Positions 16,401 to 53,693 of a DNA stretch of 64,000 bases are shown piece after piece. The DNA lies in the NCBI GenBank assembly GCA_024704765.1, contig JAKMXF010000318.1, positions 1-64,000 of the forward strand. Direction: 5' to 3'. A model generated the notes under the pieces. The model saw nothing but the letters and a program-made list of their open reading frames with translations. It did not search any database and had not been told where the DNA came from. The position numbers and the translations under genes were made by a program. The stretch's first letter is position 1. Each line of letters begins with the position of its first letter. This stretch comes from Oopsacas minuta. Its lineage: Eukaryota; Animalia; Porifera.

Positions 16401-18048
16401 GTTACATTTACTAAAGGCGGGTTTGTATGTTCCAAATCTGGAATAGTGCTCGCGGTTTTTTGTAGTTCGGCAGGGTTATAAGTAATCACAGTTTCATTAT
16501 ACATTTTTTGTTGTTGAGGTAATTTAGTCGGTAAATGTGGCACCAAATCACCAACCAATTTCTCCTCTGAAGAAATATTGTTTGGGGTTGTACTCTCAGA
16601 AATTTCCTGCGAATCTATTGTGGGATTTTTTATAAATTTAATATTGTCAACACTTTCAGATTCATCACTCTCTCCTTTTGTTATCTTTAATCTAAAGGTG
16701 TATTCCAATACAGCTTTTTCTAAAGCAATTGCTGCTTGTGTTATATAATCTTCTCCTTGTTCATCTTCATTTTGGTTTGGTAATTCTGAGCCCTGTAGAA
16801 ATAGAGATCATAAGTTACGAAAGGAATTGGCATTTGAGTATAGAAAATTTGCAATTGTACAGCAAATAATAAATTAGTAAAACTCACATTAACATCATTT
16901 TGTGTCTGTGTACTTAACTCTTGCATGTAAATATTCATAAGTGCCTTCTCAGCGAATATCCTACGATTTGGATAATTCCTAACCAACGCAAACTGATGTG
17001 CAATGCTAAGAATTTGACAAAGCTCATTCGAAGATTCCTCCTCATTCTCATTTAACACGAACTTATCGGGTACTACAGTGATAACGCAAGTTTTACAAGG
17101 ACCTCCTACTCCATCTCTTAACAGAGTACATAGTGGATTTTGAATAGGAAATGTACTATCAGAAATATTCTTAGATTTCATATGATCTAATAGAGATTTT
17201 AGTGGGTCGATCGTATTGGCTGTTAAAAGAGATTGGTTACGTATATCTAATGTAGTAGTGCCTGTTTTTGTCTGTGAGTTTGTATTAGTGGAAAAATAGT
17301 CTGTCGATAATGTTACAAAAGTAAGCTCTCCTCCTATAGGAGCAAACGAAGCAGAAAATCCAGTGAAACCAACATTGACACACATAAACTCATGATAGCC
17401 TAATTTTGCGAGATTGCTAGATCCGTCTTGCGAAATTTCGGATAGAAATTGTGAATAATTCCTATTAATTAGTTGTTTAAGACTGTCTATACTTGTTATA
17501 GTTGTCTTAATAAGTTTCTGCTGTCTGCCTTGAACATCACGGAATAGATAGGCAGCTGTTTCCAACCCACGACACAAATCAAACACGTGGCAATCCTCTA
17601 TAGAAAGTGCATAATGTGAAAAAAGTACTTGAAAAAGTTGCGTGTGTTTACATTTGGAATTGTTGATACAATAAAATATCTGATCAATAGATTCGTATAG
17701 AAGTTCTAATGGTGTGATTTGTGTATTTTTTAGTTGAATATGTGAACTTTGCAGGAATATTATCATACCGTGATATCCAATGAGAGTAGCTTCAATAAAT
17801 GAACGAACATTGTGCCAGTAGAAAGGCTGTGTTTCAGGGTCATATACGATTTTACTTACGTCATAAGAGTTTATGGAAGCTTTGGTGGATTGTGACTGGA
17901 TTAATATTGTGTTAGCGTGGGAAGCATCGACTTTAAGCAGGTAATTTCCTGTGTTAGAGATTGGTAATATATGTGAGAGAGATTTGGTTGTTATTATAGG
18001 CTGGATAACTATTATTGAAGTGATAGAGCAAATTTGTTGTTCGTCCAT
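13477..18048 (-). CDS. About 1470 aa multidomain protein: degenerate kinesin motor domain, low-complexity linker, DEP domain, ankyrin repeats. Exons 16888-18048, 15346-16792, 13477-15284
   Basis: Three track ORFs join in frame through GT-AG introns 16793..16887 (phase 0) and 15285..15345 (phase 1). Kinesin-like segments: ATLIGYHGMI, FQVLFSHYALS..VFDLC, LCTLLRDGVGGPCKTCVITVVP. DEP-like: MLQDPLRG..FTGHVITTWIM..AEEFGQWLLDQGALIH..F...LFY. Ankyrin: GLTPLLVAAQLGH, GFSPIHYAIQNG, STPLHVAA, GRTVLHAAC. The exact start (ATG 18048) is uncertain. Confidence 0.8.
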
Positions 18049-19558
18049 GGAATTGTATTCGTGAGTCTCCAAGTGTTTCTAATGGGGAAATTCTACTACG
18101 AAAATATATCCAACAAAATACTTAAATCAATATATGCAGTCAACTGCCGTTGCATCGAAACTCAAATGACAGCGATAATTATTTCCATATATAGGAAGTT
18201 TGGTATAACCGATAAAAGTTATGTTCTTTGGGAAAATATTCGTACAATTTCAGACTTCGAAATAATCAGGTATTTCGGTATATCCGTGTTCGATATCACG
18301 GGGAGTTGTTTGTAATCTCAATTTGCTTCATCAACAAAATATATATTAGCTTATTACGTATTTAATTTCTCGAAAATATTTACAATTATCATCAAAAAAC
18401 TCCGCCTAGAATATCAATTAGCAAATCACAAAAATTCAAATTTTATAGCTATTGTGATAAAAGTATCCAATGCATTTTTCTGTCTAATGGGAATTTAGTT
18501 CTGAATATTTAATTTATATAGAATTAACTAACCAAAATTTTGATTAGAATGATACAGAGATCGACATCTCAAAATATTTAGTGTTGAATATAATTTGGTA
18601 AGTCAGAGAAGTTAATTAACATATTTGATTGAATGGATAATTCATTTTCGTTGAAAATTATATAATTGTAAGACTGATTGCGAAAATTGGTGTATAATAA
18701 TATTACATTCAGTGATAGCTGTTTTAAAATATGCAAGCAAGCAAAAATAAAGAAATAATCTGTTTCTAAAATTTTCATAATTCCTCGATATCGCAAACTA
18801 TGATTGCTCGTCATTAATATCATTAATAACGGATATATTAGAGAAATGATTCGAATCTCAGTAGAGCTAATACTGTATAAGAGACAGTTTAAAGTTGTAA
18901 TCTCATTTATTTTAATTAAAATGAGGAAAAATAAGTTCCATATAACAAATCATAACAAGAGAGAAGGTTATTAAAATAGTAATTAATTGAAAAGTTAACG
19001 AATTAATTCCCATGAAAGATAAAAGCTAATCAATAGAGAAATAAGTCTATGAAAACATACAGGCACGTACGAGATAGGATAAATTATGATAATTATTAGA
19101 GAAAAGAAATTCTCCAAAAATAACATAGGTTAACATAGGTACATGGCAATGACAATTAGTTAACATAAGTGGATACAAAAACATGACGAGACATCCCATC
19201 GATTTAATATCCCACTTTCACAAAAATATTTCGCATATTTTCACATATTAACAAAGAATAACTCTGGTAATTAAAGAAAGTTTCCTATTGCATTATTTAT
19301 TTACAGTTGCTAATCCGAAAAATTTTAGAACATTTTCCAAAGGTTGTAAAACCTTTAGGGCTTGTTCGGATTAGCGATGGTCTATTGTAAATGCAAAAAT
19401 ATAATCAGCTGACATAGAGTTGTATGCAATCGAGATAAATACGCCATTATAAAGTTCCCATAATATAATATTGCATTGTAATTAGCCATTGAAAGAAAGA
19501 CAACAATTACACACTACATTCAAGAACATTATTTATAGAAGTATTTCAATACAAATCA

Positions 19559-35577: not shown

Positions 35578-36027
35578 TTAAACAATCGCATGTTTACGAG
35601 TCATTTCTTTTGCATTCTTATTATACAGCTGTATATCTTGCTTGTATAGCCTAGCTATCTCTGGGACAAGTGGATCTTCAGGATTAGGATCAGATAGTAG
35701 TGAAGAAATAGTCATAAGCATTTTAGAAATTGTAAGAGCAGGTGACCAATCGTGGCCAAGAATGTCTAGAGACATCTGCCCTAAACTAGTAATGTTTGGG
35801 TGATAAATTCGTGTAATAAATTGCACTTTAGGGGGACGAAATGGGTACGAGTTACAGAATTTCATGTCCAAATAGAACACTCCTCCTTCATAAGGAGTGT
35901 CTTTAGGACCCTTTATAGTACCCACCCAATTGAACAGATCTTCATCTCCTCTAGGTTCTGCCGTAATCATCTCCTTTGGATTAGCCCATATATCTTTAAA
36001 CTCTTTCTTCAAACGTTTCGAAGACAT
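35578..36027 (-). CDS. UBE2D-like E2 variant, copy 1 (catalytic Cys replaced by Ser)
   Basis: UBC fold: KRLKKE, GPKDTPYEGGVF, YPFRPPKV, YHPNITSLGQM-S-LDIL, WSPAL. Ser codon TCT at 35770-35772. Start ATG 36027 chosen by homology to copy 2. Confidence 0.9.
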   Translation of the reverse strand: MSSKRLKKEFKDIWANPKEMITAEPRGDEDLFNWVGTIKGPKDTPYEGGVFYLDMKFCNSYPFRPPKVQFITRIYHPNITSLGQMSLDILGHDWSPALTISKMLMTISSLLSDPNPEDPLVPEIARLYKQDIQLYNKNAKEMTRKHAIV

Positions 36028-37108
36028 GCTATATTTACAAAACATATGTAAACTAATGCTCTAAAGATCTACGAAGCGAAATCGAAGCACTCAATTACCT
36101 CAATTATTAAAACATATTTGAAATATAGACATATCAAACAGCAGGTATTTTTGTCAATAGGCTGCAGATTGGAATAAAACATAAAGATTGTGAAGTTACC
36201 TAGCAAGAGAAGTACGTTAGTTAAATATATAAACTACGTATTAACTGGGGCAAAACCAATTGAAAAACCATTGTAGGACCTGATATTATGCAAATATTTG
36301 TTTGTATTATCAGTAAATTCGTATTAACCGTGTTCGTACTAATACTAACGAGGTTCTGCTGTGTAAACAATAATACATGCGCATAATAAGTAAGAATGAA
36401 GTTGTTAAGTGTATTTAATTAGAAATCTTCAATAAAACGCAGATCCAGCTATTTTATAATATTCAGATTTTGCGACAAAATATGATACAGTCCTGTTTGT
36501 TTATAAAAGTGAATTAAATATTGAAAATTCTCCGATGTTTGTATTTGAAAATATTTACATAGCATGTTTCTGAGTCATTTCTTTCGCGTTCTTATTATAC
36601 AGCTGTATATCTTCTTTGTAGAGGTGAGCTATCTCTGGGACAAGCGGATCATCAGGATTAGGATTAGGTAATAGAGACCAAATATGGATGAGAACTTTTA
36701 TAATTGTATAAGCAGGTGACCAATCACTTTCTAGAAATTGTATAGACAGCTGTCCTGAACTATTAATGTGAGGATGATAAATTGGTGTAATAAATCGCAC
36801 TTTAGGGGGACGAAATGGGTAGAAGAGACAGAATTTTATGTCCAAATAGAACACTCCTCCTTCATAAGGAGTGTCTTTAGGACCCTTTATAGTACCCACC
36901 CAATTGTACAGATCTTCATCTCCTCTAGGTTCTGCTGTTACAGGCTCAACTGGGTTTTCCTTTATCTCTTTAAGCTCTTTCTTCAAACGGCTCAAAGACA
37001 TACTCTATATTACAAAACATTTGTAAATTAATGTTCTAGAGATATACGAAGCGGAATCGAAGCACTCAATTACCCCCAATAATTAAAACAAATTTGAAAT
37101 ATAGACAT
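36028..37108. repeat. Duplicated upstream block of about 105 bp: 36028-36133 versus 37002-37108
   Basis: Both blocks read ...ACAAAACAT.TGTAAA.TAATG.TCTA.AGAT.TACGAAGCG.AATCGAAGCACTCAATTACC...TTAAAACA.ATTTGAAATATAGACAT. Confidence 0.8.
36555..37001 (-). CDS. UBE2D-like E2 variant, copy 2 (Cys replaced by Ser; HPN changed to HPH)
   Basis: YHPHINSSGQL-S-IQFLESDWSPAY; TCT at 36744-36746. Confidence 0.9.
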   Translation of the reverse strand: MSLSRLKKELKEIKENPVEPVTAEPRGDEDLYNWVGTIKGPKDTPYEGGVFYLDIKFCLFYPFRPPKVRFITPIYHPHINSSGQLSIQFLESDWSPAYTIIKVLIHIWSLLPNPNPDDPLVPEIAHLYKEDIQLYNKNAKEMTQKHAM

Positions 37109-37514
37109 ACTAGCCGACAGACGGTCAAAATTTGTTATATCAGGAGTTCGTGTTAACAAGAGTAATACCTAATGAATAACAACTGTAGAGACCTGATTTT
37201 GTGTTAATTTTTGTCCGTCTAATCTGTGGAAATTCGTATTAACCGTGTTCGTAATACAAAGTTCTACTGTCTGTATATTCCATATCAATCTAAATATGTA
37301 CGTAACAGATAATTCACTAAAATGTTTAGTATAATCAAGGTGTACGACAGAAAAGCACTGGGAAACTTCAGTAACTATAAAAGACATCTTTGAAAAGCAA
37401 ATTATACAATTACAATTTACAAATAGTATAAAACAGCAACCTTATTGCTGTGGTAAAATAAGTATCAAAATTCACATAACATGTTTGTAAAATTCCGCAT
37501 TCAATACACCATAT

Positions 37515-37997
37515 TCAAACTGCATGTTTAAGAGTCATTTCCCTCGCAGTTTCGTCATACAATTGTCTATCTTCTCTATAAAGTCTACCCATATCAGCTA
37601 AAATGGGATCATCAGGATTAGGATTAGCGAGTAGAGATGAAATAGCTGTAAGAAGAACAGGGATAGTAACTGTAGATCCCCAACCAGATGGTAAAATATT
37701 ATTAACAGATACTTCTCCTTCTTTGGCAATGTTTGGATGATAGATTGGGGTAATAAATTCTATTTTTGGAGGAAGCACGGGATATGAAGCAGGAAAGTTC
37801 AAATTCACATAAAACATTCCCCCTTCGTAAGGAGAGTCCTTTGGACCTTTTATGGTGGCAACCCATGTGTACATTTCATTGTTTTCATCTCCTCTTGGTT
37901 CTGCAGTCTCCATTTCCATTGGGTTAGCCATCATATATGTTAACTCCTTTTTTAATCTGTTTAATGATACTTTTGATGTATCGAGACTACACCCCAT
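37515..37997 (-). CDS. UBE2D-like E2 variant, copy 3 (Cys replaced by Ser; most divergent)
   Basis: YHPNIAKEGEV-S-VNNILPSGW; TCT at 37707-37709; N-terminal MGC extension. Confidence 0.88.
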   Translation of the reverse strand: MGCSLDTSKVSLNRLKKELTYMMANPMEMETAEPRGDENNEMYTWVATIKGPKDSPYEGGMFYVNLNFPASYPVLPPKIEFITPIYHPNIAKEGEVSVNNILPSGWGSTVTIPVLLTAISSLLANPNPDDPILADMGRLYREDRQLYDETAREMTLKHAV

Positions 37998-38528
37998 CTG
38001 TATAATATACTACTAATATATGTAATATGATTTCAGTATTTACTACGAGCAGCTAGTGACGATAGGAATTAAATTTATCATATTTAGCCTATACAAGAGG
38101 AAATCCGTTTTGGCTCTAAATGCATATGAGTATTGTTGAAAACATTTTGCTCTAATTTTACAGAGACCATATGAAAGAAATTGCAACTGTTCTCTGGTAG
38201 TAGCATAAAATCCGAGTTTATTTAACTTCATGAAACTACTTAACATACACAAAAATCCATTTCATTATCCATGGTATATAATAAATGAGAAGTGCAGTAT
38301 TTGATCAGTCCATAGATTGAATACAACATGACCAAATATAGCTATACGTATTCTATAGAATCTATAGTATAGATAAATAATATAATTCTCATTAAAATAA
38401 GAATCAAATATTGAAAATATAATAAATAAGAGATGAAAAGTAATTTTTCTGTAGACTAGGGTCTATAATAGTAGAATAGTGAGTACTATAAAGGTTAAGT
38501 GAAATTTCGAGATTATTAAATAGTCCAC

Positions 38529-41500
38529 TTAAGAAGTATGGTAATGTAAACACATCCATTTTCCATCAAAGTTCTTCCATACCCTAGTTTCTGGGATATT
38601 TACACTTACATATTTCCCATCAACATCAACATACATAATCTGTTTGGTATAAGAAATACAAGCACCATTCATTCCTATCATATGTACAATTGGATTATTA
38701 ACAGACACACGTTGACCTTTGAACATAGGTAATTCGGCTGGTATTATATTAGTACAATCTGGAGCAGATAATTGACTGTAGAGTTCTGTGTTGTTATAAA
38801 TCTTTGCTTCTGTGATGCTCTGTGTAACAGCTATGACGTCAACAATGAAATCTGCCTCATAATGCCGGAGATCTTCGTCTGGGACATTTGTAGGCATTTT
38901 CTTGGATAATTTTTTAATATTCGTAGATAATTCAAACACAGTAGTTTCAGGATTCTCAGTAATACTGCTTGGTATCTTGAGTAGACAATTTCCATCGTCT
39001 TTAGTGCCTTCTGTTATCAATCTTTTGAATTTGTTTGTCATCATCACAGTACGACCTAGAGTTTTCCATTTACGTCTAGCCTTATTGAACTCTTTCAACC
39101 CATCAATCGTTCTGGATCGGTGCAATCTTGCTGGTACAGTATCGCGTTTAAATACCCAGGGGTGTTTAAGAACTTGTCTAGCAGTAATACGCTGTACTGG
39201 ATCAAAAACAAGCATTTTAGAGATTAAATCTTTTGCTTGTGGAGTGACGTCATTCCATTCTTCGTACCCAAAGAAATCGAACTTCCCTTTGGAGAGGATA
39301 TTCTTAACAGCCCTAGTGTCTGTTTGTGGATAAGGCATATAACCTACCAATAAAATGTATAGGAGAATCCCACATGCCCAGATATCTCCATTTTTGGTGT
39401 AGTACCTATTTTCAAACACTTCAGGAGAAATGTAGCAAGGAGTTCCGGCCATCTCATGATGAATTAGTTTATCAGATTCCAATTCGATTGCTAATCCAAA
39501 GTCTGTGAGTTTTACATCTTTAGGTTCTTCAAAGCTTGTTAAGAGCAAATTCTCCGGCTTGATATCCCTAAGAGATGCAAATCAATCTGCGGAGACATCG
39601 CTGTATCGATTGTTTAATTATTCTAATTTAGTATTTTAGCATTCAAAAGTATCAAGTTAGATTGTACTATAATCAAAGGCGTATCATTTTAATGAAGACA
39701 GGTACAAAATTAAGTAGATATGAAACTGGCATGGCTCCCTACGTATAAAGTGTAGAGAGATGTCACAGAGAGAGGGAATTACCTTGCTGAAAGGATGTCC
39801 ACAAACTACTGGTTATTGTACATAACTTTTACAAAGAAAATTACAAGACTTATATTCTACAATATTGACTGATTAATTAGAAATCAAAACGTGATATTGG
39901 AGGAGGGATTCGTTTATGATATATAATTCATTTGTCAATAATCCAGGAATCTGAGGAGTTCATTTGCAATACTGGGATTCTGAGATTTGGAATTGAATTC
40001 GGGAAAATATTCGTTAGTTATCTATAGAAGTTCAATATACCTAGAATATATATTTCAGATATGCTAAACTCCATCATACTTCTTCTATGAATAATTCTGA
40101 ATACTTTTAGGAATATCCAAATGGAAGATGGAATATTAATATTAATTAAATCTAGGGAAATAGTTGCATGAATTTCCCCAGAGATGATGATGATGAAATA
40201 TACGTATAAATTCAGAATTATTTTTTAATATTTTAAAGAAACTTACAATTTCTATTTTTGTTTTATGGGAAAACTAATAGTAATTTTATGTACAAAAGAA
40301 AGGTAATACATAAAAATAAACAAAAATAAGTGAATGGGAAAAATGTTTGTTTTACAGAAGTGTAACTAGGGTAAATCATGAAGAATGTAAGTGAACACAT
40401 TTCCAAACATCACCATTATTCTCCCAAAGGCAAGTTTCAAGTGTTTGATGCGTCATATGTGTATTTTCTTCATTAACATATTGAATTAACTTTGAATAGG
40501 AAATGCAAGCACCGGTTGAACCTATTTTCTTAACTCTCGGATTAATAATAGTTACTTGAACTGTATCACCGAAATTAATATTCAAATCAAGCTCAAATTT
40601 CGTAAAATTCCCAGTACAAATTGAACCACAAGTTTTTGAATCATTCATGGCCATAACTTTACAAAAGTTAGCTGTTAGCGAGATAATTTCATTCAAAAAG
40701 TCTTCATCAAGACTGCCAACTTTTGTTAGCATCGGCAAGCTAACATTCCCAGAGACTTTCCTTTGGCTATCTTGTGGTTTTCCAATTGTATTATCTGATT
40801 TGTGTTTGTCATTAAGAAGCATACCGAATCGTTGTGAAACCATTGTACTAATAATAGCACCCTTTAGCTTACGTCGAGCGTTAAACTTTTTCAAACCTTG
40901 AATGGTGTTCTGATGGTGCAATTTCGAAGCAAACTCTTCTCTATAATTAATCCATGGATGGTTTAAAGCTTCTCTAGCAGAAATACGCTTGCTTTGATCA
41001 GTTTTGAGCAGTTGATTAATCAGAGATTTGGCTTCGTCAGTTATTGAATCCCATTCTGGTGAATAAAATTCATATTTTCCTTCAGAGATTATTTTTGAGA
41101 GAACTTTCTCATTATCATCCCAAAAAGGTGGATAACCAACTAACAAGATGTATAAGATTACCCCGCATGCCCATACATCAACAGGTTTTCCATAAATTTC
41201 CTTATTCACTATTTCAGGAGCAAAGTAGCCTAATGTACCAGCAATTTTGTGGTAACCAAGAACGTCTTCTGGAATCCATAATGCTAATGCGAAATTCCCA
41301 AGTTTGATATCCGAGTTTGCTTCTTGGGTTTTGAGTAGTAGATTCTCAGGTTTGATATCCCTATTGGAAGATTGATCAAAAACAAAACTCAATATTTTTG
41401 GAATTTTCTTACAGTGAGAAACTATTAAGCTACTAATTCATTAAATTGAAATTTGATAAGATATTTTTCCAAAAAATTCTATCTATTTCTAACTCAGTTA

Positions 41501-44500
41501 TTCACACACCAAATTTGAGGAAAGCAACATTAAACAAAATTAGAACTAAACTATTGCCTGATTCCCACTGAGTCGAAAGGAACTTAAGCTCATAAATAGC
41601 TTGTAAAATAATTAAATGTAAATTAATACGACAAGGAATAACAGCATAATAAGAAACAATTACTTTAAAAGCATTGAAAGTTAAAAACAATTAAGCAATA
41701 GATACTAGACTGTAAGCATAATATATTGTTACTTGAAGTAACGAAAAGTTATTAGTTCATTATAAGATTATATTAACTAGGATACGCGTGTAGCTCATTT
41801 TGTGTTTATTATCCTTACATATGCTAGCTAATTACAAATCACTAGACAGGGAAAATCAGTATAATCTAACCTTTACAGTAAGGCAAGAATTGTACACAAA
41901 TTTCAGTTATAGTTACTTTGAAAATATTTGAATGAAATATTACTGTCGAAAGCGAATATTTTGCCAAGCAAAATGCACTAGAAAAGTGTCAATAAACCCA
42001 ACGAGTTTTGTATATATTATGGAGAAAGAAGGACAATCGAGGAGGCAAAACGTGGAGGTAATTGAACCCGTCCGATTTCGACCGAATAATCATTTAAGAA
42101 CTGTTAGAATAAAATAAGAAACAAATCAAATAACCAACAATGATAGTGAACTACTAAAACGCCAAGATAATATATATTATACGTAAATGAATAATTATAC
42201 AAATCTTCTCATACAATAATCCTATCGATAACATGTGTACTGCCACTTTAGATTGATGAGTTCATTCTTACATCAACAAGTGTTGAAAATTAAAACGCAG
42301 AGACAAGAATACCAGTTGATACTTGAATTATGTTAATTCTAGTATCAGTGTGCAGGTGAATATTCTAGTAGGCATCATGATAATTTCAATACTAATGATA
42401 AACTGTACTAGAGTTGAGTTCTCAAGTTGTGTTGATTTTCAGTATCATTACGTAATGAATATAATAAACAGCAGATAGCTGCAGTAGGGGTATCACCGCC
42501 TATAACCACGAGGTATGCTAGGTGATCTCAATTCCATTATCTTTATTTTCAAGAAATTCATTTTAGCCTGCTTTACTTAATCCTTGGACTTACAAATTGA
42601 AATCATCGTTAAAATCAACCACGTGGGTTACTGGATAGTTAATTCTTTTGCAATATTTCATTGACATGGTATAACTGTTTATAGCTATTGTGAGTTCAGA
42701 ATATTCAGGCTTATGTAGCGCGGATTTAGGCTCATTTTTTGAACTAATATTTACCTAAGAGTACGAAAGACTCCTATGTCGTAATGTAAAATGTATAGTC
42801 TAGGAATCTAAGCGTATGAAAAATATTAGAATACACTCTTAGGCTGTCAGTACATGAATGAAACACTGTCAGATAATTATAAGTGAATCAGAATGAAATT
42901 CACAGGCAGTATATCTCCTTAGATCCTCTTAAAATTCGCCATTCTCAATCCTCTCGTATCCTCACTTTTTGCCAATTTATTCGAATATTTATATAACAAA
43001 TCGGCTAACCTGATGATAAAGATTATTATTACTATTCCTCATAAAATAGAGTTCTCATAGAGTTTATACACAATTTTAAGTATGCAATGAATATTAATGA
43101 TTACTAACCTCACTTTATTTATGAAATTATACTAATTCAATTAGTGAATTCATCTAATGAATAAATAGCAATTTTAAGCAAATCAACAGGTTGTCTGTAA
43201 AGATAATTCATTAAATCTACGTCTATAGATGTATACTATTCTTCAGCTGTCTCAATCACCCAATATGGTTACTGTAATTAATCTGTCTCGCACTCCATTT
43301 AATGGATCATTTCCATCAATTCAACTCATTAGATAGAATAATGCACTGTATAATATCAAAATCATATTACCATATGGTATCATCTGACGTAATTAAAGGA
43401 ATGTATCATGTATGTGATTGTAATTGCCTCAAATGATACTATGGTTAAATTGCACAATATGAAGGTGTGGTTAGAAAAATACGATTCAGTACTTTCCATA
43501 CATTAAATGTAAATAGCTACGGACATTATAAATCCTGAAAGTTAATCAAATCCCTTGTTACTCAATATGTCATTGCCACGTATATTACGCAATATACTAT
43601 TAATTTCAATTGTACTATTTTAGTTCCTATATGAGGATGCAGGCGGTAATATCATTATTATGTATTATAGAAGGATTAACATTAGAATTGGAGTTACCTA
43701 CCATTATTTGTGGGTATCACAGGTGGTGGTGTATAAATAAAATCTGCTGATGTGAAAAATAAGAAAAATGCATGTTTTAGGTTTTAATTTCTTGTATAAA
43801 TATGTAAAGTTCATAGAAAAGTAATCACAAAGCAATGCTTGTAGGATGTAAAAAATATCCAATTGTAATCAACCCTCGGGGAAAGTATACGAGAGAGATC
43901 TTTGAGAGGAAAATTAGTACCCAAAATTAAGGATATTAATAAGATAAATTAACAGAGATTCCATTAATAGTAGTGGACAAATTCTTTGGAAATATATGAT
44001 GGCATTAAAATGTATAATCCACTTAATATGCACAGCTAAATATAGATATTATTGAAATTATCATCAGAGCAATTAATATTGCAATTTTTTGTTATCAAAA
44101 TACGCTTACTTTTTGTCAAGTTTGTAATAATTATATAACGTGTATAAATGGCATAATAAGGTAGTTTTCTGACTATTGACTGATATCGAATAATCGATAT
44201 TTTCGGAAATTCGATGATTTGCAAACACATTAAGTCTTCTAAATTATCGATTAAGCCTCATAAACAGACATCTTACTCCAGCATAAACTATCTAAGGATA
44301 CGAGAAATTCCAACATGAATTCCATGTTTAATATCTCAGTGAATCGAGGAAATGCCTTTTTGAAGGTTTCAAAATAAGGTTAATTTTCGCGAGAATTGCC
44401 GATTAACTTTACGTAGAAGAACTAAAGAATCTAATCTAAATGTATTGTAATTATACACGAATTATACACTAGTTGATAGCTGATATAACTTAAGAATTGT

Positions 44501-47500
44501 GTTAGCAAGAAAAATGCATACTGCTCCAACTTCTATTAATCATGTTTTGCGTGGTTGGTGGTGAGAGAAAAGTGCCTTGATCCGCATCTGTTATAGGAGA
44601 GTTTAAAACAGATCGAAGATAAAAGTAGAAAACTTTTAAATCAACAAAATTTTCAACTTTCAGCTGATGCCAATAATCTAAACATTTTCTCAAGAATGTT
44701 ACATATAATACTTTTGGTAATTGATAATTAGATTTGAGGTTAATATGAAGGAAAATCGGTGAAATATCTAATGAATCATATTTGTGAGTTTAAGAACATT
44801 CATAAGTTCGAAAATAATAGATACGGGATATGTGTATTTTTGTTGAAAATAGCAATGCCCACCCATTAGAACAAAGCCATGTTTGAATTTTCTTTGGACA
44901 ATAAAAGTCAAGGGAACTTTTTGAAGCGAACGAAATCTAAAAATCATATGATTTTTCGGCCAAAATAACCACAATGAACGAACTCTCATAGAAAAATTAA
45001 AATCATATAAATTCAATTCACAAAGGTATAAAAGGTGCATAGGAACAGATAACTAACTTCCAGAACAAAAGAAACGGAATATACTGAGAATATAAATCAC
45101 TGAATGTGAATAATCAGTTATAAGAATCCTAATGATAAACTATAAGGAATCATATCCGAGCAGTAAGGCACTGAGGTAAAGACATTGGCTTCTAACATCT
45201 GACAGGTTGATACAGATCACACAGAGAAGACGTTATACATGTGCAAACGGGCGTTTGAATCATGTTAATCATGTTAATGTCAATGAAAAGCGTATAGATA
45301 TTGTGTATGCTAATTTAGAATAATAATAATAATAACAATCTTTAACGCTTGGATTATATTACTAAACATTGGTTTGAAATCAGAGGAATGCTATTATTAT
45401 TATTATTGAAATAATGCTAATCAAAGAATTGAATTATCTATTCGGATAGTACAGCCACAAAAATCACAGTAAAATAGGTTAGAAATACGTATTTTAAACA
45501 AAGAAAACAAAATAAAACAAAGTATTATAATTCTACAATTGATCTGAAATAATAATCAAATTACTGGTGTGTTATCTGTGAAATATTGTGTGTCTATGAA
45601 TACCATAAAATTCGCTTAATAAGGGTATGCAGGTTGTACTAAAAATATCTTGCAGTCAGTATTAACAACATATTTTGACAATCTGAATAAGTATATTCCA
45701 GTGCATTTCCTTGAGGTCTGTGGTCCATTTTCAAGGTGTTTGCAGTAATATTTTATACAAAAATATTGTACTTTAAGATGGTATGTCATGCCGCTTGTAC
45801 TTTTTGTAGAAAGTGTCGAATATAATACGTATCATGATATTATACATAATCTGAATATTTTACAGTCTTCAAAAATTACGTTCTAATATACGCCCAAAAG
45901 GCAGTTTAAAATTTGTTATTTCAGAAAGAAAGAGTCAAACCAGATCTATCATAAATGAAATATTATACTTTACAACAGCAAGTTAGTCAACACCTAAAAC
46001 AAATTCAAATATGTGTACTTCCTACATTTCTTACAAACCAAAGTTCATGTGTTGCCGAAGCTAATCTCACAAGAGACGTCCCCTGGTTCAAGTAAAAGTT
46101 CAAATTGTGAATTAATTGTATTCTAATAGAAGCGAACATGTTGAAATGCATGATGATAATAAAAAATTAGCCAGATTCGGTGGAATTATACAGAATAATA
46201 TTAGTATGCTTTAAGATAAAAATCTTCTGAGAATACATAACTTGTTCTGTCTACAGCTGTAACGAAACATTGACACGATTCATACATTTCTTCTGTTTGT
46301 GATCTCATGTTGTAAATTTCTTCCTTTATTTTGGAAATATTCGTTAGTGTTTCGTTTGATTTTTTCTCGATTCCTTTCCTCATTGCGACTGTTTGTTTCC
46401 AGAATAATTGTGTGTCTTCATCTTCTTCTCCTCCTGGGACACGAACAACATCGTCATAGAAATAAAACTGATCGACATTTGCTGTACTGGGTTCTTCTAC
46501 TGTTTCTTTATACTTTTTTTCGTTCAATTTTTGTGTTAAGAATGGAATAAATGTGAGTGAAGCAGTATTTCTTATAACTCTGCCAACGCGAGACATATTG
46601 AATAATATTGGTGATGATTTTTGTGAAAGATATATTTTAATATTCAACAGAAAACTGCTTGCTTATATAGTAAACCAATTCTATGTGTTTGTGCACTGAA
46701 CCAACTCTATGAAGTGCTTATAAGTCAGTTATGATGAAAGTTGGAATTGAATTGAGAAGTATTGAAACATAAAGTTTACTATAGTTATACTGAAGTTCGT
46801 CATTAACTAATTAGGATATAACAATATGTTTTCGATGTTGAAATAGACAAAGTAATAACTGCCTAGTAAGATATAAAATGGGGGGTGGGGGTGGGGGTGG
46901 GGAGTGATAATAGTATGGGTTCCACATTGTTAATTATTTGTATTAGAAAAGTACTCACTTTATAAATATACAAGCATGGACATTTATAATGTACTAATAC
47001 GTACAATCTCTTGTGTTCTTAGTTGGTCGATCTTCAAAGTCAATTACATAAGTATACCAACAGCTTAAATATTATTCAGATTCTTACAATTTACTGTATA
47101 AACTATTCCGCGTTGTCTACAGCTAGTATTTAATTTTTTCGGCCTAGCATATGAGCCTTGCGTAACGAGTATTCTACAAATATTTCCAGATCTACGATAT
47201 CAATATTAGACAAGCACTACATAGATACGTAGTTGGATTTTCATAGCTTGGGCATTATCCTTGATGATTAATTAAATATAATTTACTAATTTGGGTATAG
47301 GTCATTGTAAATATTACGTTTATGATTAGTAGTACAGGTTTAAAGACGATTTATTTCTTAAATATTCGAGTTGCATGCCAGTCTATATTGTCACGTTTTT
47401 CTGCAGCTAGAAGTTGTCAGAATATTTTCTGAACATTGTAAACTAGCAAGCCAAAATAAAAATGAATACTAATATCACGCTGAGTTCAGTAAACTCTCGA

Positions 47501-50500
47501 CCCGCGAAATTACCGCCATTAATTCGTACACACAAAAATTCATGATTAATTGGAAATTCTGAAAATATTAATTGCTGCAAATATTTGAATTCTTCTTGTG
47601 CTAATTAACTCCATTAGAACTACTAACATCAACGGAGAACTATAGTATAATGTTATGAACCACAAATAAACACACAACACATAAATACATAATTTTTTGT
47701 TATTAGATTTATGGATAATCATGCACAGTTGTAAAGTACATATAAATGTTATGTGTTGCCTTATCGGATAGAATTGGGGCAGAAAACAAATTTACATTCA
47801 TATTATAGATTGTTATAGCGTGCTATCTACTGGTAGATGAGTTGCAGGTTGCTATGGTGGGTTAAGAGGAATGTAGAGTGTAATGATTTCGTGGTGCAAT
47901 TGAAAGTTCATTTCACAGTTGAAGGCACAATAAATACATTAGTTCTACCCGAAAGAGGATATTACGATGTAATAGTCAATATATTCAGGCAAATATAACT
48001 TTATCAAAGCTCAATAATATGACGTAAAACAGTCAAGCATTACTTTAATGTTTCTATATATATTCAGTAGCAGTTTATATCCGCTATATCAGATACTTGG
48101 GAAATCAGAATTTTTGAGATAGCGGATGTCAAAATTTGAAAGCACAAATTTATGAATCAAAACTCGAAAATACTATTGATACTATAGAAAATCTATAAGG
48201 AAAGCTTTTGATTTTTCCTAACTTTGGCTCATAAACCAAGAAATAATGTCAAAAACTGTCACTAACAAAATGCTATCGTGCCACATACAATAGCCCTTAT
48301 GCATGACACACAATATAGAATTCCTTTCCAATGAACTAGTATGGTATTAATGACTCTGAGCATAACTAATTCAAAGAAAACACATACAATATATCTTGTT
48401 AATAAGAATCCAACTGACATGTGTCAAGTAAATGCTCTGCACTTGTGTTATGCAAATCTTCAAGAGACAAATACTTGTAATCAATAAATAATACACTAAG
48501 TATTCAGAAACTGGTCCTAAGAGCTTCAATTAATGCAATAATGAAGTGATTAAAATCATACAAAATACTCACATAAAAGTACTAATAGAGCATGGAGATA
48601 CAAATACATTACTAACACAAACATTTGTATTAGGGAAGCATGTAAAATACTTAGTATGAAGGTACAGCAATAGAATGTAACCTTTTAGATGTAAATATCC
48701 TTGTTAAAACATGCTCTATAGAAGTGTATCAACAGTGTTAATAAATTATTCTTTTAATAAAGTATTCAACCTTGAGTACCACATGATACATCATAATAGG
48801 AAGGTGATAATATAATAATTGGTTTATGTTTCATATAATAATAAAATTTGTTATTCATATATGAAAAGCATATAATTACAAGGAAGTTTATGGATTCAGT
48901 TATTTGTAGAATTATCAGTGCTTTTTGGTAAAGAATTTTAGAATTTGACAATAGTTGAAAAGGTCGTTTAAAGAAATCACCTGTTTTCGTAAATCAGCCT
49001 TAAATGGATATAAGATATGTAAAATAGCTTAGAAATCTGTGCTAAACAGCTGGGGATAACATATGTTAGTAGACATAAGTATATAACATATTTGTGTAAA
49101 GACCAAACAGGTGATGATTTGTAGCAAAGTTCCACATAAAAAAAAAAGTGAAATATATCAGTAATGGAGCATATCCGTAGAACTTTTACAAGCAGATTAT
49201 CTATAATATAATATATATTATCAATTCATTATTGCAATTACGTGCATACGGTATCGTATAGAACTGTTCTTAACCTTTACATAATTAATATTATATTATC
49301 TGCACAATCTATGATAAGATTTTAGTTAAGTTTCACAAGTTACAACCATAATTATTTGAAATGCAAAGATATGGAAAGTTTTAAACTATAAAGAGTAGCT
49401 TCAGGAAGGAGTTTCTGCTATTGTAAGCACCAAGATATCTGTCGCATAAACCAAATATTTTGAATATGCTGTCATTTAGCAAAATACAACCGTTGTAGAA
49501 ACCATAAAAATGCATTTAATATTCTAATTCATAATATGGCGTATTATTAAATAACAATTAAACACATCAAATACTATATCCATATGTCAAGGTGAGGAAC
49601 TTTAGAGTATGCAAATATTTCTATGTTCTCATTATTACTATTATGATAATTCCATTATCTTGTATGTAGTACATCTGCAGGATCCACACACACAGTCTCA
49701 CCTAAATATATTGGGTATATGCAAATACAGATTGTAACTTGTTTAGTTTTTATTAGTTACAAATTAATTCCATAATTACTTGTTGATGAAGTAATTATAT
49801 CTTTTAACACAATTACTTAGAAACATCCACCACTCTCATAATATGTAAACAGAGATCGAACTGACTTGATAAACAAAATTTTTAAAGGAAAGACGTAAAC
49901 AGAGATTAAATGATGGATTAAATGTAATATCAGATTATTAAATGAAGCACAGACAGAAAGTCACTCATTAAAATTAATTTTTGGGAAATAAACTTTGAAT
50001 TTTGGTTGTGATGTCGGATTCAAAAATTTGATGGTAAGTTACTTAATGATTTATGGCATTGTTACTACGATCGTAAACAAGTAAGGGAAGGAGAATGAGA
50101 GGACATCAACAAGAAATTACTGTATTACATGGCGATAGGAACAGCCAGGACCCGTCAAGTTGGCCAGGCGTCCACCGGTCCAACATTTGGACTGCTAATA
50201 GAAACAGTATTAGTCACCCAGATCAACTTTGGTGTCTGTATATATTTTATATAGGTAAATATGATCAATTGTAATATGCTTGCTACTACCTTGTATCATA
50301 CTCAGTGTGACTATTTACCTAAAATTTCACCGACTAAACTCAGTTAATAAGTTTTCATTGAAAACGATACGAATAATAAAGACATAATATACGTATTTGC
50401 CAACTCATTTCAGATAGCGAAATTTTACGATTTTCTAATGGTTTCGCCCGGATAGGTTATGTGGCATTCTAACATGTAATTCATTTAATTATTCTAAAGA

Positions 50501-52413
50501 TATTCAAACATCAAGTGGTAATGCTTAACACTATGTTCTCATAAGCATATATATAGTATACGTATATCTAGTCATTATGTTCGTTAGCTTAATAACCAGA
50601 TATAAATTGTAAGAAAAGATAAATGTACCTCAACACACATACACCTGTTTATCAACTGATAGAAAGAACAAAGCAATAAATTAGCTTACTTGATAACTTC
50701 GTATCCAATACTTATGAGATTAAGAAATGTATACATGCTACTGAAATACTGTAAGGTAGTAATCAGATAAGACATACACACTAGGATTGTGCGTATTATT
50801 TGCTTCCCGAAGGGATACGTCTTATCTGAGCCTAATGTATGGTTAAACGCGAATATTTTGAATACAAATGTTAGAAAATTATCATAGTATATTAGCTCAG
50901 TCCTGTCTAGCAATTTTTCACGAATGATATTAATCATGTGATAGTGTTGGTTAGTTGCATCACCCTCTGAATAGGGCAATTCACTGGTGGGCGTATCTAT
51001 CATATTACACAATTAGTGTATAGCTATCTATCTCGTAAGACAGACAGATTTAACCATGAGACATTACAAATATCCTCATATGAGACATTATTCAAGTAGG
51101 ATTTCTAAAGTAACAAATGGGAATATTAATGGGAAATATACGCTGTAGAATATCCTCTAAGCAATTGATATTACAAAGATATTATTGATTGCTAAATAAT
51201 ATTATTAATGATATATCCCTTGTAGATTCACATATTGGAACTGAAATAAGGAAATGGAGCATGTATGAAGCATTCATAAAGCTAACGTTTTAGAAATAAG
51301 ATCACTGTATCAGGGAAACATTGCTGTACAAAATGTGGCCTACATTGTAATATGCTTGAAATAAGGAATTCTACATACGAATAAACCACAATTTCAATAA
51401 TACGTTGTTTGAATGTAAATGGATAAATCACCTGTGAATAATGTTCTTATCATGACAATATGCAACTGCATCAAGTATCTGCTGTATACATTTACTAGCT
51501 TCAGATTCTGAGTAATATTCTCTCTTTACAATATCTTCAAATAACTCACCCCCAGTGACCAAATCAAATATCATATAGTACTGAATGTCATCTTGAAATA
51601 CGTTATGAAGACGTACAATATGAGGATGCTATGGAAAGAAATTGATTCAAATTATTTGTTACACCAATGGTATTAGCATAAATTAGTATATTACGTCATT
51701 TGCTTTCGCAATGGTTATTGATTAAATGTAAATTTATACCATTCAGATCCTCTCAAATAAAATCCTATACCCCATGGAACATTCTATAATTCAAACATTC
51801 ACCTTTTCCCAAGTTCTATAATTACAGATATAGCATATATCCTGCTGACAATATCGGCAGTAGAAATATACATAATACTTGTCTATATAACTGCGGTATT
51901 GAAATTTTCATAAAAATCTTCAAAAAGTGTCTACTTATCAAAATTAATCACGATTAAATTCTGCTTCATTTCAATACGCAAAATAATTCAATTAATAATG
52001 AATTGTATATTACAACCCAGCACAGCTTGATAAGAGGAGGTTATACTAGAACACAAGATTTGAATTAACTATTATATTACTTATGTCAGCAGAATACGTA
52101 CGTTTAATTAAGCACTTTAGAAGGATAATTAATTGAAAAGAACGGAATAATAGTTAGTGTATTATCCAATGAATATACATAGAAATTGTATTACCTTAAG
52201 CTGTGAACAGATTTGAGTCTCGTTTTCAATTCTTGAACTCAATACTCTACTTCTAATTATCTTAACCGCGAATTCATCTTTTGTCTGCTTATCTCGACAC
52301 TTTTTGACAATTCCGAACGTTCCTTGTCCCAGCGTCTCTAGAGTATCGAACTTTTCTAAGAATCCAGTTTGGATTGGGACTGATAGCTTGAGACCAGACT
52401 TTGATGACGTCAT
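38529..52413 (-). CDS. CAMK2: CaMKII-like kinase, isoform B (484 aa): join 52195-52413, 51432-51628, 38529-39567
   Basis: Exon 1: [16 protein letters not shown]. Exon 2: [36 protein letters not shown]|gt (phase 2). Distal terminal exon begins ag|G-GAT-ATC-AAG (RDIKPEN), with DFG, HRSRT and a hub domain ([20 protein letters not shown]). Confidence 0.82.
40376..52413 (-). CDS. CAMK2: CaMKII-like isoform A (466 aa, DFG changed to NFA): join 52195-52413, 51432-51628, 40376-41360
   Basis: Proximal terminal exon begins ag|G-GAT-ATC-AAA (RDIKPEN), with [23 protein letters not shown] and a hub domain ([20 protein letters not shown]). Same phase-2 junction as isoform B. Confidence 0.8.
46201..51012 (-). 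pseudogene. Possible decayed TRP(A)-like channel gene inside the long CaMKII intron
   Basis: Ordered minus-strand fragments resembling TRP segments: S1/S2-like at 50686-51012; S4-S5-linker-like [21 protein letters not shown] at 49621-49701; S6-like [17 protein letters not shown] at about 47282-47350, preceded by an in-frame TAA; TRP-helix-like [14 protein letters not shown] at about 47208-47268; coiled-coil tail at 46201-46647. By-eye similarity only. Confidence 0.3.
46880..46902 (+). other. Predicted G-quadruplex, G6-T-G5-T-G5-T-G4
   Basis: GGGGGGTGGGGGTGGGGGTGGGG seen directly in AT-rich surroundings. Confidence 0.6.
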
Positions 52414-52832
52414 TAAGCTATTCTAATAAATGGACGGAATTTCGGGGTGGTTGAATTCAGGGATTTTAGATTTAACCTCTAGCTAACCGATTCCTAACCC
52501 TTTTAACCCTTGGACTCCTTATTACAGTTTTAACACTTTATGGACATGTAATACAAATTTTGAAGTACTGTGGAGTGTGGACCCCCTTCTGTGGCCCGTG
52601 ACCACCAAGGCTACATGGACCCCAGGATGGCAACCGCAGCTCTTACTTTATAAGAATTTCAAAAAGTGTAAAATTTGTTCTGCTGGCCACTATTTAAGCT
52701 TCAACTTCATATGAACACAAATCGTTTCAACATATTTCGCGAATCCCATTTAAATTTCATTCAAATACAAGTGTGTGATAAAAACATAGAAAACTTCACA
52801 TTAAACGAATCTGTATATAACAAGTATAATAC

Positions 52833-53693
52833 TCAACTAATGTATTGTTCTCGTCTCATATCAATGCGTATAACGCTAGCATCAATTAACACGAATACAT
52901 AGCCATAATAATCTATAGCCAATCCCTGTTGGAAACGACCTTTTTCACCAAACAAATATTCCGAATACACATTCTCTATTAATCTACCTTCCCAGTTATA
53001 AACCATTAAAATTCCTTCTCTATAGTTTACTATATTCAATTCTTCGCGTGCTGGATGAATACCTATGAACTGAATCTTCTTAATTAATGGATTGAAATGA
53101 TTTCTCGGTCTTATATCGCTTCCTAATCCGGGGTAAATTGTTGTTAAACTCGTAGAAATGTCAAATTTATCGAGCATTACTATAGAATTGGGGTCTCTTA
53201 AAAGTATGAAAATTTCAAAACTCCCAGACTTGATGTCTTGAGGTTCAGAACACAAATCGATTATATAATTTTTGCATGGTGTATAACAGTATACAAGTTT
53301 ATTCCATCTTGCACAAAGAAATAAAGCTAATTCTGTGCTTGCTTCATCTACTAAAACACCCATTATATCTTTAAATGTATAGATTTTATCTTGTATTCTA
53401 ATTTCTTGAAATGCAGTTATGAAAAATCCATCTAGTGTGAATATTTTGACCGATCCTATTCCAGATTTACTAATACAACCAACAAACAAGAAATTATCAT
53501 ATATAGATATACCAGAACATGTACAGTTATCTTCTAATCCCTGTTCTATCGTTTGGATGTGTTCAGATTTCTGTGAAAATACATGTATACCTCGGTCACT
53601 TGTAATGTACATTTGTGCATTTACTCTTGATACATCTAGAGTGCAACAGTCTTTGTAATCGATTACAGCCAGTAGTTCAACTTTTCGATTCAT
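52833..53693 (-). CDS. NHL/6-bladed beta-propeller-like protein, 286 aa
   Basis: Repeats CSGISIYDNFLFVG, IMGVLVDE, QQGLAIDYYGYVFVL; no catalytic motif recognised. Confidence 0.65.
   Translation of the reverse strand: MNRKVELLAVIDYKDCCTLDVSRVNAQMYITSDRGIHVFSQKSEHIQTIEQGLEDNCTCSGISIYDNFLFVGCISKSGIGSVKIFTLDGFFITAFQEIRIQDKIYTFKDIMGVLVDEASTELALFLCARWNKLVYCYTPCKNYIIDLCSEPQDIKSGSFEIFILLRDPNSIVMLDKFDISTSLTTIYPGLGSDIRPRNHFNPLIKKIQFIGIHPAREELNIVNYREGILMVYNWEGRLIENVYSEYLFGEKGRFQQGLAIDYYGYVFVLIDASVIRIDMRREQYIS

Follow-up and report, generated by a model that had tools for sequence, protein, structure and literature searches.

CaMKII, which assembles into holoenzymes of 12-14 subunits, is the textbook example of an oligomeric, memory-like kinase, and its known isoform diversity arises almost entirely from small exons in the linker. 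In the CaMKII proteins of other animals (human CAMK2A-D, Drosophila CaMKII, and C. elegans unc-43), the kinase domain is followed by an autoinhibitory and calmodulin-binding segment, a linker, and the hub, and this same order is encoded by a gene on contig JAKMXF010000318.1 (assembly GCA_024704765.1) of the glass sponge Oopsacas minuta (Hexactinellida). The gene occupies the minus strand of a 64,000-nt stretch of that contig (hereafter, the window), to which coordinates refer unless another locus is named. Two 5′ exons supply the sole N-lobe of the kinase and are followed downstream by two large homologous exons, A and B, each of which begins within the catalytic loop and ends with its own stop codon. 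By comparison with the CaMKII of other animals, the sponge gene would swap the C-lobe, the regulatory segment, and the hub; in addition, the hub is about 20 residues shorter and one of the two forms lacks the DFG aspartate.

Partial parallels exist in other systems. The α-KAP protein, a hub-only product of an internal CAMK2A promoter that lacks the kinase domain and can join or anchor holoenzymes, is, as one form of the sponge gene may be, a non-catalytic, hub-bearing product of a CaMKII gene; however, whereas α-KAP depends on an alternative promoter, form A of the sponge gene would keep the kinase fold with one catalytic change and would be made through the choice of a 3′ exon. CASK, which carries GFG in place of DFG, resembles form A in being a CaMK-type domain without the Mg-binding DFG aspartate, and, CaMKII itself apart, CASK structures (3c0g, 3mfr, and others) are among the solved structures that exon A matches best (E of about 1e-48 to 1e-50). 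CASK is, however, a MAGUK scaffold that has no hub and lacks the catalytic-loop asparagine, which form A keeps.

With respect to splicing, Drosophila lola and mod(mdg4) combine shared 5′ exons with many alternative 3′ exons, and JNK possesses mutually exclusive exons within its kinase domain; in these genes, as predicted for the sponge locus, shared 5′ coding exons join one of several homologous tandem exons in the same phase. The JNK exons are internal and exchange only a short stretch of the C-lobe, and lola and mod(mdg4) swap zinc-finger or FLYWCH tails, not half of a catalytic domain, whereas the proposed exchange in the sponge CaMKII gene would divide the protein at the catalytic loop and take in the oligomerisation domain as well. 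The proposed splicing layout belongs to a known class, that of alternative last exons derived from tandem exon duplication. What is unusual is that the exchanged part comprises half a catalytic domain, including the DFG motif, together with the calmodulin switch and the hub, and that one of the alternatives is conserved in a DFG-less state. A literature search returned no description of an exchange this large through a kinase catalytic loop.

The proposed arrangement is that of one CaMKII-family gene, in which the giant last exon was tandemly duplicated before the sampled species diverged. The exon 2 donor would be spliced either to the proximal acceptor, that of A, or past A to the distal acceptor of B, giving products of 466 and 484 residues that would have residues 1-138 in common and differ over the other 70% or so. 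It is probable that both junctions, exon 2 to A and exon 2 to B, are used. A further and more tentative proposal, plausible but short of an even chance, is that the locus is an ancient glass-sponge splice switch, in which one N-lobe is combined either with an active back half or with a DFG-less one of pseudokinase type, each with its own calmodulin site and hub; one promoter could thereby yield an active CaMKII and a non-catalytic partner or competitor, in separate or mixed holoenzymes. The anatomy of the locus, its conservation, the history of the duplication, and the selection on each part are read directly from the sequences, whereas both splice junctions, any occurrence of the two forms in the same cells, the catalytic status of A, and any co-assembly of the two hubs are inferred.

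The coordinates of all features are given in Table 1. Exon 1 contains the start codon, the glycine-rich loop (GQGTFG), the VAIK-type lysine (AVKII), and the glutamate of the αC helix. Exon 2 encodes the remainder of the N-lobe and the hinge, up to the His-Arg of the HRD motif, and its donor splits the HRD arginine codon. The first-pass annotation had placed the N-lobe on these two exons, ending in phase 2 within the catalytic-loop arginine codon, and had placed two downstream exons, each starting at ag/G-GAT-ATC-AAR (the slash marks the exon-intron boundary), some 10 and 12 kb away; the sequence bears out both placements, at distances of 10.1 and 11.9 kb. Its further claim, that no second N-lobe lies between them, also holds: tblastn of the N-lobe against the whole window (E≤10) matches exons 1 and 2 only. 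When joined in silico, exon 1, exon 2, and A form an open frame of 466 codons, and exon 1, exon 2, and B one of 484. A and B are 36% identical to each other, and each passes the Pfam cut-offs for Pkinase as the C-terminal half of the domain (profile positions 123-263), so that both lobes of a CaMK-type serine/threonine kinase domain are recognised, although the lobes are contiguous only if the predicted splice occurs. Open frames of 985 or 1039 nt in DNA of about 31% G+C (the window as a whole is about 30%-35%), kept in seven other contigs, are far beyond what chance would leave.

The same arrangement was sought in related species and was found in seven contigs from six other assemblies (ERZ25071281, ERZ25069837 with two contigs, ERZ25072740, ERZ25072730, ERZ20067936, and ERZ25766962), which are taken, on similarity and synteny alone, to be further glass sponges. 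These ENA assemblies hold single-exon open reading frames (ORFs) 51%-66% identical to A and 50%-57% identical to B. Gene order is common to the seven contigs and six samples: IQGAP, one or more NHL-like ORFs, exon 1, exon 2, an ORF of 131 residues, A, B, UBE2-type E2 genes, and an aminotransferase. Wherever the fetched DNA extended that far, there is one N-lobe per locus. The distance from exon 2 to A is 7.5-10.2 kb in the relatives, and the spacer between A and B is 0.37-0.81 kb. Across species, each of the five splice sites is identical, as is its phase, with AG/gtaa kept after exon 1, tag/CAY before exon 2, CAC AG/gt after exon 2, and tag/G GAY ATC before both A and B. Exon 1 orthologues with the same donor are present in loci L001, L003, L006, L007, and L016, and exon 2 is 85%-89% identical across species, its donor being identical in all six species compared. 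The terminal exons are less alike (54%-67% identity among A orthologues and 46%-60% among B orthologues); A is open in O. minuta and in all seven other contigs, and B in O. minuta and six others.

Several observations bear on where A and B begin and what they could join. In all species, an in-frame TGA lies five codons upstream of the B acceptor, and, ahead of A, the reading frame is shifted in L001 relative to its close relative L003 (in which the ORF calls read ...ELDAFSNRD and MNLMHSNRD, respectively); both exons therefore begin at the acceptor. No conserved ATG is present in A or B, and the first in-frame methionine of B (HHEMAGT) is a tryptophan in L006. Likewise, tblastx and blastn comparisons of O. 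minuta with the relatives revealed no conserved upstream coding exon for A or B: between exon 2 and B, the conserved blocks are limited to a nested gene and a handful of short stretches of non-coding DNA. Residues 1-40 of A and B are among the best conserved, and hence translated, and the only donor in the matching phase is that of exon 2. The anatomical hallmarks of alternative last exons are present, namely, homologous tandem exons, acceptors in the same phase, one compatible donor, and a stop codon in each exon. Directly upstream of the B acceptor lies a 35-nt element that is identical at 27-33 of its 35 positions to five other contigs, while synonymous sites are saturated, and that is more conserved than the coding sequence; it holds a yTGAT branch-point-like motif, which is also found before A, and an extra block. 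An exact-complement scan found no conserved complementary partner for this element.

Assignment of the gene to the CaMKII family is by domain content. The hub profile CaMKII_AD (PF08332) scores 51.1 bits in A and 54.4 bits in B against a cut-off of 22.1, and the match in both is limited to profile positions 60-125 of 128. The first-pass annotation had taken each exon to encode a full back half; the C-lobe, regulatory segment, linker, and stop codon are indeed there, but the hub is some 20 residues short and its Pfam match partial. In the alignment, every sponge copy examined lacks these residues, which other animals have (GNLVEGxxFHxFYF). AlphaFold2 nonetheless models the hub fold of both A and B confidently, with a predicted local distance difference test (pLDDT) score of about 80-94 over the final 110 residues or so. 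Exon A aligns end to end with the human CaMKII alpha structure 5u6y (E 1e-74), and for exon B the alignment covers the kinase and regulatory segment together with the final 57 residues of the hub. In both, an autoinhibitory segment with the Thr286 equivalent and a calmodulin motif follows directly on the kinase domain, and the Thr286 equivalent is invariant in 28 of 28 aligned sequences.

The two back halves differ in their catalytic and regulatory residues. Whichever is used, the VAIK lysine and the His-Arg of HRD would be supplied by the shared exons 1 and 2; with these, form B possesses the full motif set of an active kinase (VAIK lysine, HRD aspartate, and DFG aspartate) and form A does not. 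In A, the DFG aspartate is replaced by asparagine in eight of eight loci, as NFA, NFG, or NFE (KLGNFALA in O. minuta), with the catalytic-loop aspartate, lysine, and asparagine invariant across loci. Aspartate to asparagine at DFG is a standard kinase-dead change; CASK, a CaMK domain without the DFG aspartate, can still act without Mg2+. Since form A lacks this Mg-binding residue, it is predicted to be either an inactive kinase or, like CASK, an atypical one. A carries a canonical calmodulin-binding segment, and the residue at -3 from its Thr286 equivalent is histidine in most copies instead of arginine. In B, DFG is kept in every intact copy (KLTDFGLA in O. minuta), and an RxxT autophosphorylation-type site (LHRSRT) retains the arginine at -3. 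Its calmodulin-binding segment, FNKARRKWK, has a one-residue insertion, its linker is longer than that of A, and its stem branch in the tree is longer. Form B keeps its catalytic residues, but its calmodulin site is altered and its hub is the more divergent of the two.

A maximum-likelihood tree of the C-terminal regions places the six A copies in one clade (support 100/99) and the five B copies in another (100/100), with A and B as sister clades (97/94), and each clade repeats the topology (L006,(L004[+L007],(O. minuta,(L001,L003)))). On this tree, the tandem duplication of the terminal exon predates the divergence of the sampled species. A further locus, L009, on a Logan contig, has a single terminal exon that starts from the same split arginine codon (R/DLKPEN), in which DFG is intact and the calmodulin site canonical, and that branches just outside A and B (94/89). 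L009 probably represents the state before duplication, although its contig stops 315 nt past the stop codon, so that a second copy is possible. Because A and B are sister clades and L009 falls outside both, the giant fused terminal exon is older than its tandem duplication. The 3′ end of the intron, with its yTGAT branch-point-like motif and AG, was duplicated together with the exon. The earlier proposal that a fused terminal exon had been duplicated is thus well supported by the sister clades, the congruent species topologies, and the copied intron end. The same assemblies also contain two CaMKII-like paralogues, of 449 and 474 residues (in L008 and L010, respectively), each a single uninterrupted ORF with its own N-lobe, a DFG motif, and a hub shortened in the same way; the split locus thus belongs to a set of several paralogues.

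The ratio of non-synonymous to synonymous substitution rates (dN/dS) was taken from the closest pairs, synonymous sites being saturated between most species. Between L001 and L003, it is 0.07 for exon 1, 0.01 for exon 2, 0.20 for A, and 0.23 for B; between L004 and L007, it is 0.016 for exon 2 and 0.13 for A (the sequence flanking L004 ends before exon 1, and L007 has only a dead B). Overall, values are 0.13-0.20 for A, 0.10-0.23 for B, and 0.01-0.07 for the N-lobe exons, which indicates purifying selection on A and B and stronger constraint on the shared N-lobe. In ERZ25766962, B has become a pseudogene: a stop is reached eight codons past the acceptor, the DFG region is gone, and several frameshifts and further stops are present, with the acceptor and the conserved upstream element still recognisable. 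Exon 1, exon 2, and A are intact and constrained in this species. Because the N-lobe and A persist beside a dead B, the N-lobe is functionally tied to A; and because B is constrained elsewhere and needs an N-lobe, B is tied to exons 1 and 2.

The deposited annotation of O. minuta does not contain this gene as a whole. Its GenBank protein (P0001; 331 residues) consists of MLLK followed by exon A, to which it is 100% identical; the model starts 300 nt upstream of A, and its MLLK derives from an 11-nt mini-exon that is unconserved in every other species compared and is probably an ab initio artefact. RNA-seq reads were mapped for that annotation with TopHat -I 5000 (PMC10280926). With introns limited to 5 kb, junctions of 10.1 and 11.9 kb were unusable as annotation hints, and the deposited model is truncated for this reason. 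Other long-intron genes in the O. minuta annotation may be split or truncated likewise.

A number of results weigh against the alternative use of A and B as last exons of one gene. No full-length product of either form was found in a collection of 5.8 billion proteins: searches with A returned the deposited truncated model and single-exon ORFs only, searches with B no O. minuta entry of 190-604 residues, and searches with exon 2 two genomic ORF fragments only, to which the 50%-cluster library added nothing. A degenerate pattern for the junction of exon 2 with A or B, run on JGI metagenome contigs, gave four matches, all to unrelated kinases of about 30% identity. Comparison of the acceptor regions with the long intron for docking or selector RNA pairing revealed no exact complement of at least 12 nt and none that is positionally conserved. 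An intron of 10-12 kb is some 30 times the genome mean, which is 341 bp (PMC10280926), and within it lies a gene on the same strand that carries a TATA box of its own and an ATTAAA-like signal; the polymerase would have to read through this gene. Lastly, the spacer between A and B contains AATAAA or ATTAAA in O. minuta and L006 but neither hexamer in the other four of the six species, so that no independent 3′ end is evident for the A form; the two forms may therefore share the 3′ end of B and differ only in the choice of 3′ splice site.

Some of these points would be accommodated if A and B were separate genes, each with a promoter in the non-coding DNA that flanks it, and made proteins of half a kinase, a regulatory segment, and a hub without an N-lobe, as implied by the deposited model of A with its 331 residues, the N-lobe exons being a separate short gene or a relic. 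The 300-nt upstream start of the deposited model, the independent promoter-bearing gene between the N-lobe and A, the exceptional length of a 10-kb intron in this genome, and a conserved non-coding block 2.9 kb upstream of A would all suit such an arrangement. However, the mini first exon is not conserved, for neither A nor B is an ATG or a coding block further upstream conserved, and in all species the split codon with which both begin is exactly in phase with the donor of exon 2; moreover, the N-lobe exons, the most constrained part of the locus, would be left without a partner, and without an N-lobe the first 40 or so residues of A and B (catalytic loop, DFG or NFG, and activation segment) are modelled at low confidence. 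Separate genes are thus unlikely. It is quite unlikely, too, that only one of the two exons ever joins the N-lobe in O. minuta and that the other is a silent duplicate or heading for loss. The pseudogene in ERZ25766962 shows that the pair is dispensable, and A lacks its DFG aspartate; yet both frames remain open at saturated synonymous divergence with dN/dS of 0.1-0.23, the change of aspartate to asparagine in A is itself kept in every locus beside an invariant catalytic-loop D, K, and N, the B acceptor region is strongly constrained, and the N-lobe and A persist where B is dead.

A or B might also obtain its N-lobe from outside the locus, either through trans-splicing or from a different CaMKII-like gene in the genome. 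Trans-spliced alternative 3′ exons are known from Drosophila mod(mdg4), and intronless CaMKII-like genes with N-lobes of their own are found in the same assemblies (P0144 and P0247). Each of these paralogues is, however, one complete open frame that lacks a donor at the HRD codon, whereas the local exon 2 donor is phase-matched and linked to A and B in every locus reached by the fetched DNA, which makes an external N-lobe very improbable indeed. Alternative last exons are the only coherent reading of the sequence, in view of the shared phase and donor, the lack of an ATG or upstream exon belonging to A or B, the selection on both, and the single N-lobe. If this reading is true, the locus would be a natural test of co-adaptation among the kinase lobes, the autoinhibitory segment, and the hub, with the N-lobe held constant, and it would show the role of a DFG-less subunit in or beside the holoenzyme. 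O. minuta has no neurons.

Table 1. Coordinates of the CaMKII locus and neighbouring features in the O. minuta window and in other loci (a slash marks an exon-intron boundary)
Feature	Locus	Position	Strand	Description
Exon 1	O. minuta	52195..52413	-	ATG...AAG/gtaa, ends in phase 0; from sequence, translation, and Pfam Pkinase positions 2-55
Exon 2	O. minuta	51432..51628	-	tag/CAT CCT...ATT CAC AG/gt, ends in phase 2; Pkinase positions 57-121
Long intron to exon A	O. minuta	41361..51431	-	10,071 nt (11,863 nt if measured to exon B)
Exon A	O. minuta	40376..41360	-	aatag/G GAT ATC AAA...TGA; C-lobe, regulatory segment, linker, shortened hub, stop
Exon B	O. minuta	38529..39567	-	cttag/G GAT ATC AAG...stop; C-lobe, regulatory segment, longer linker, shortened hub, stop
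35-nt conserved element	O. minuta	39568..39602	-	gcgatgtctccgcagattgatttgcatctcttag
Mini-exon	O. minuta	41664..41674	-	11 nt, ATGCTTTTAAA/gt; first exon of the deposited model, source of MLLK
B pseudogene (ERZ25766962)	L007	~18040-19200		same as L005 11361-12420
Single terminal exon	L009	814-1788		Logan contig SRR2064712
CaMKII-like paralogue	L008	1496-2845		ERZ25766962; 449 residues
CaMKII-like paralogue	L010	6001-7425		ERZ25072740; 474 residues
Nested single-exon gene	O. minuta	46201..46596	-	131 residues; 69%-78% identity across species
Nested gene	L001	6046-6450		
Nested gene	L003	5303-5698		
Nested gene	L004	4731-5126		
Nested gene	L006	10001-10462		
Nested gene	L007	10001-10396		
Nested gene	L015	1882-2286		
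Nested gene	L016	4621-5016		
~140-nt conserved block	O. minuta	44231-44370	-	non-coding; core ATTTCCTCGATTC...GGAATTCATGTTGGAATTTCTCG
~140-nt conserved block	L001	8394-8516		
~140-nt conserved block	L003	8390-8528		
286-residue ORF	O. minuta	52836-53693	-	just upstream of the kinase gene
286-residue ORF, tandem pair	L001	1-694 and 831-1688		
286-residue ORF, tandem pair	L007	2963-3847 and 4188-5039		
UQ_con (E2) genes	O. minuta	~35578-37997		directly downstream of exon B
E2 genes	L001	12609-13832		
E2 genes	L003	12604-13920		also in other relatives

The gene nested within the long intron has a conserved TATA box, CTATATAAA, about 75 nt upstream of its ATG, and a conserved block, TTCAACATGTTCGCTTCT, in its 3′ untranslated region; its product has no significant Pfam match and no informative Atlas match. 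The ORF was considered as a third alternative 3′ exon, and this is ruled out by the conserved TATA box and ATG and by an upstream frame that is unconserved and contains stops elsewhere. In the clade of O. minuta, L001, and L003, a non-coding stretch of about 140 nt is conserved. It lacks an Rfam match and, lying 2.9 kb upstream of exon A, could act as a regulatory element; the presence of a conserved micro-exon at 44.3 kb is ruled out, the putative donor being unconserved. No conserved promoter-like elements stood out upstream of exon 1 or exon A. An Rfam search of positions 38000-53000 gave no match at E≤1, and no tRNAs were found.

Immediately upstream of the kinase gene, the ORF of 286 residues has no Pfam match and is 44%-59% identical in the relatives, some of which carry it as a tandem pair. 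The E2 genes on the other side of the locus are syntenic in the relatives, usually in two copies.

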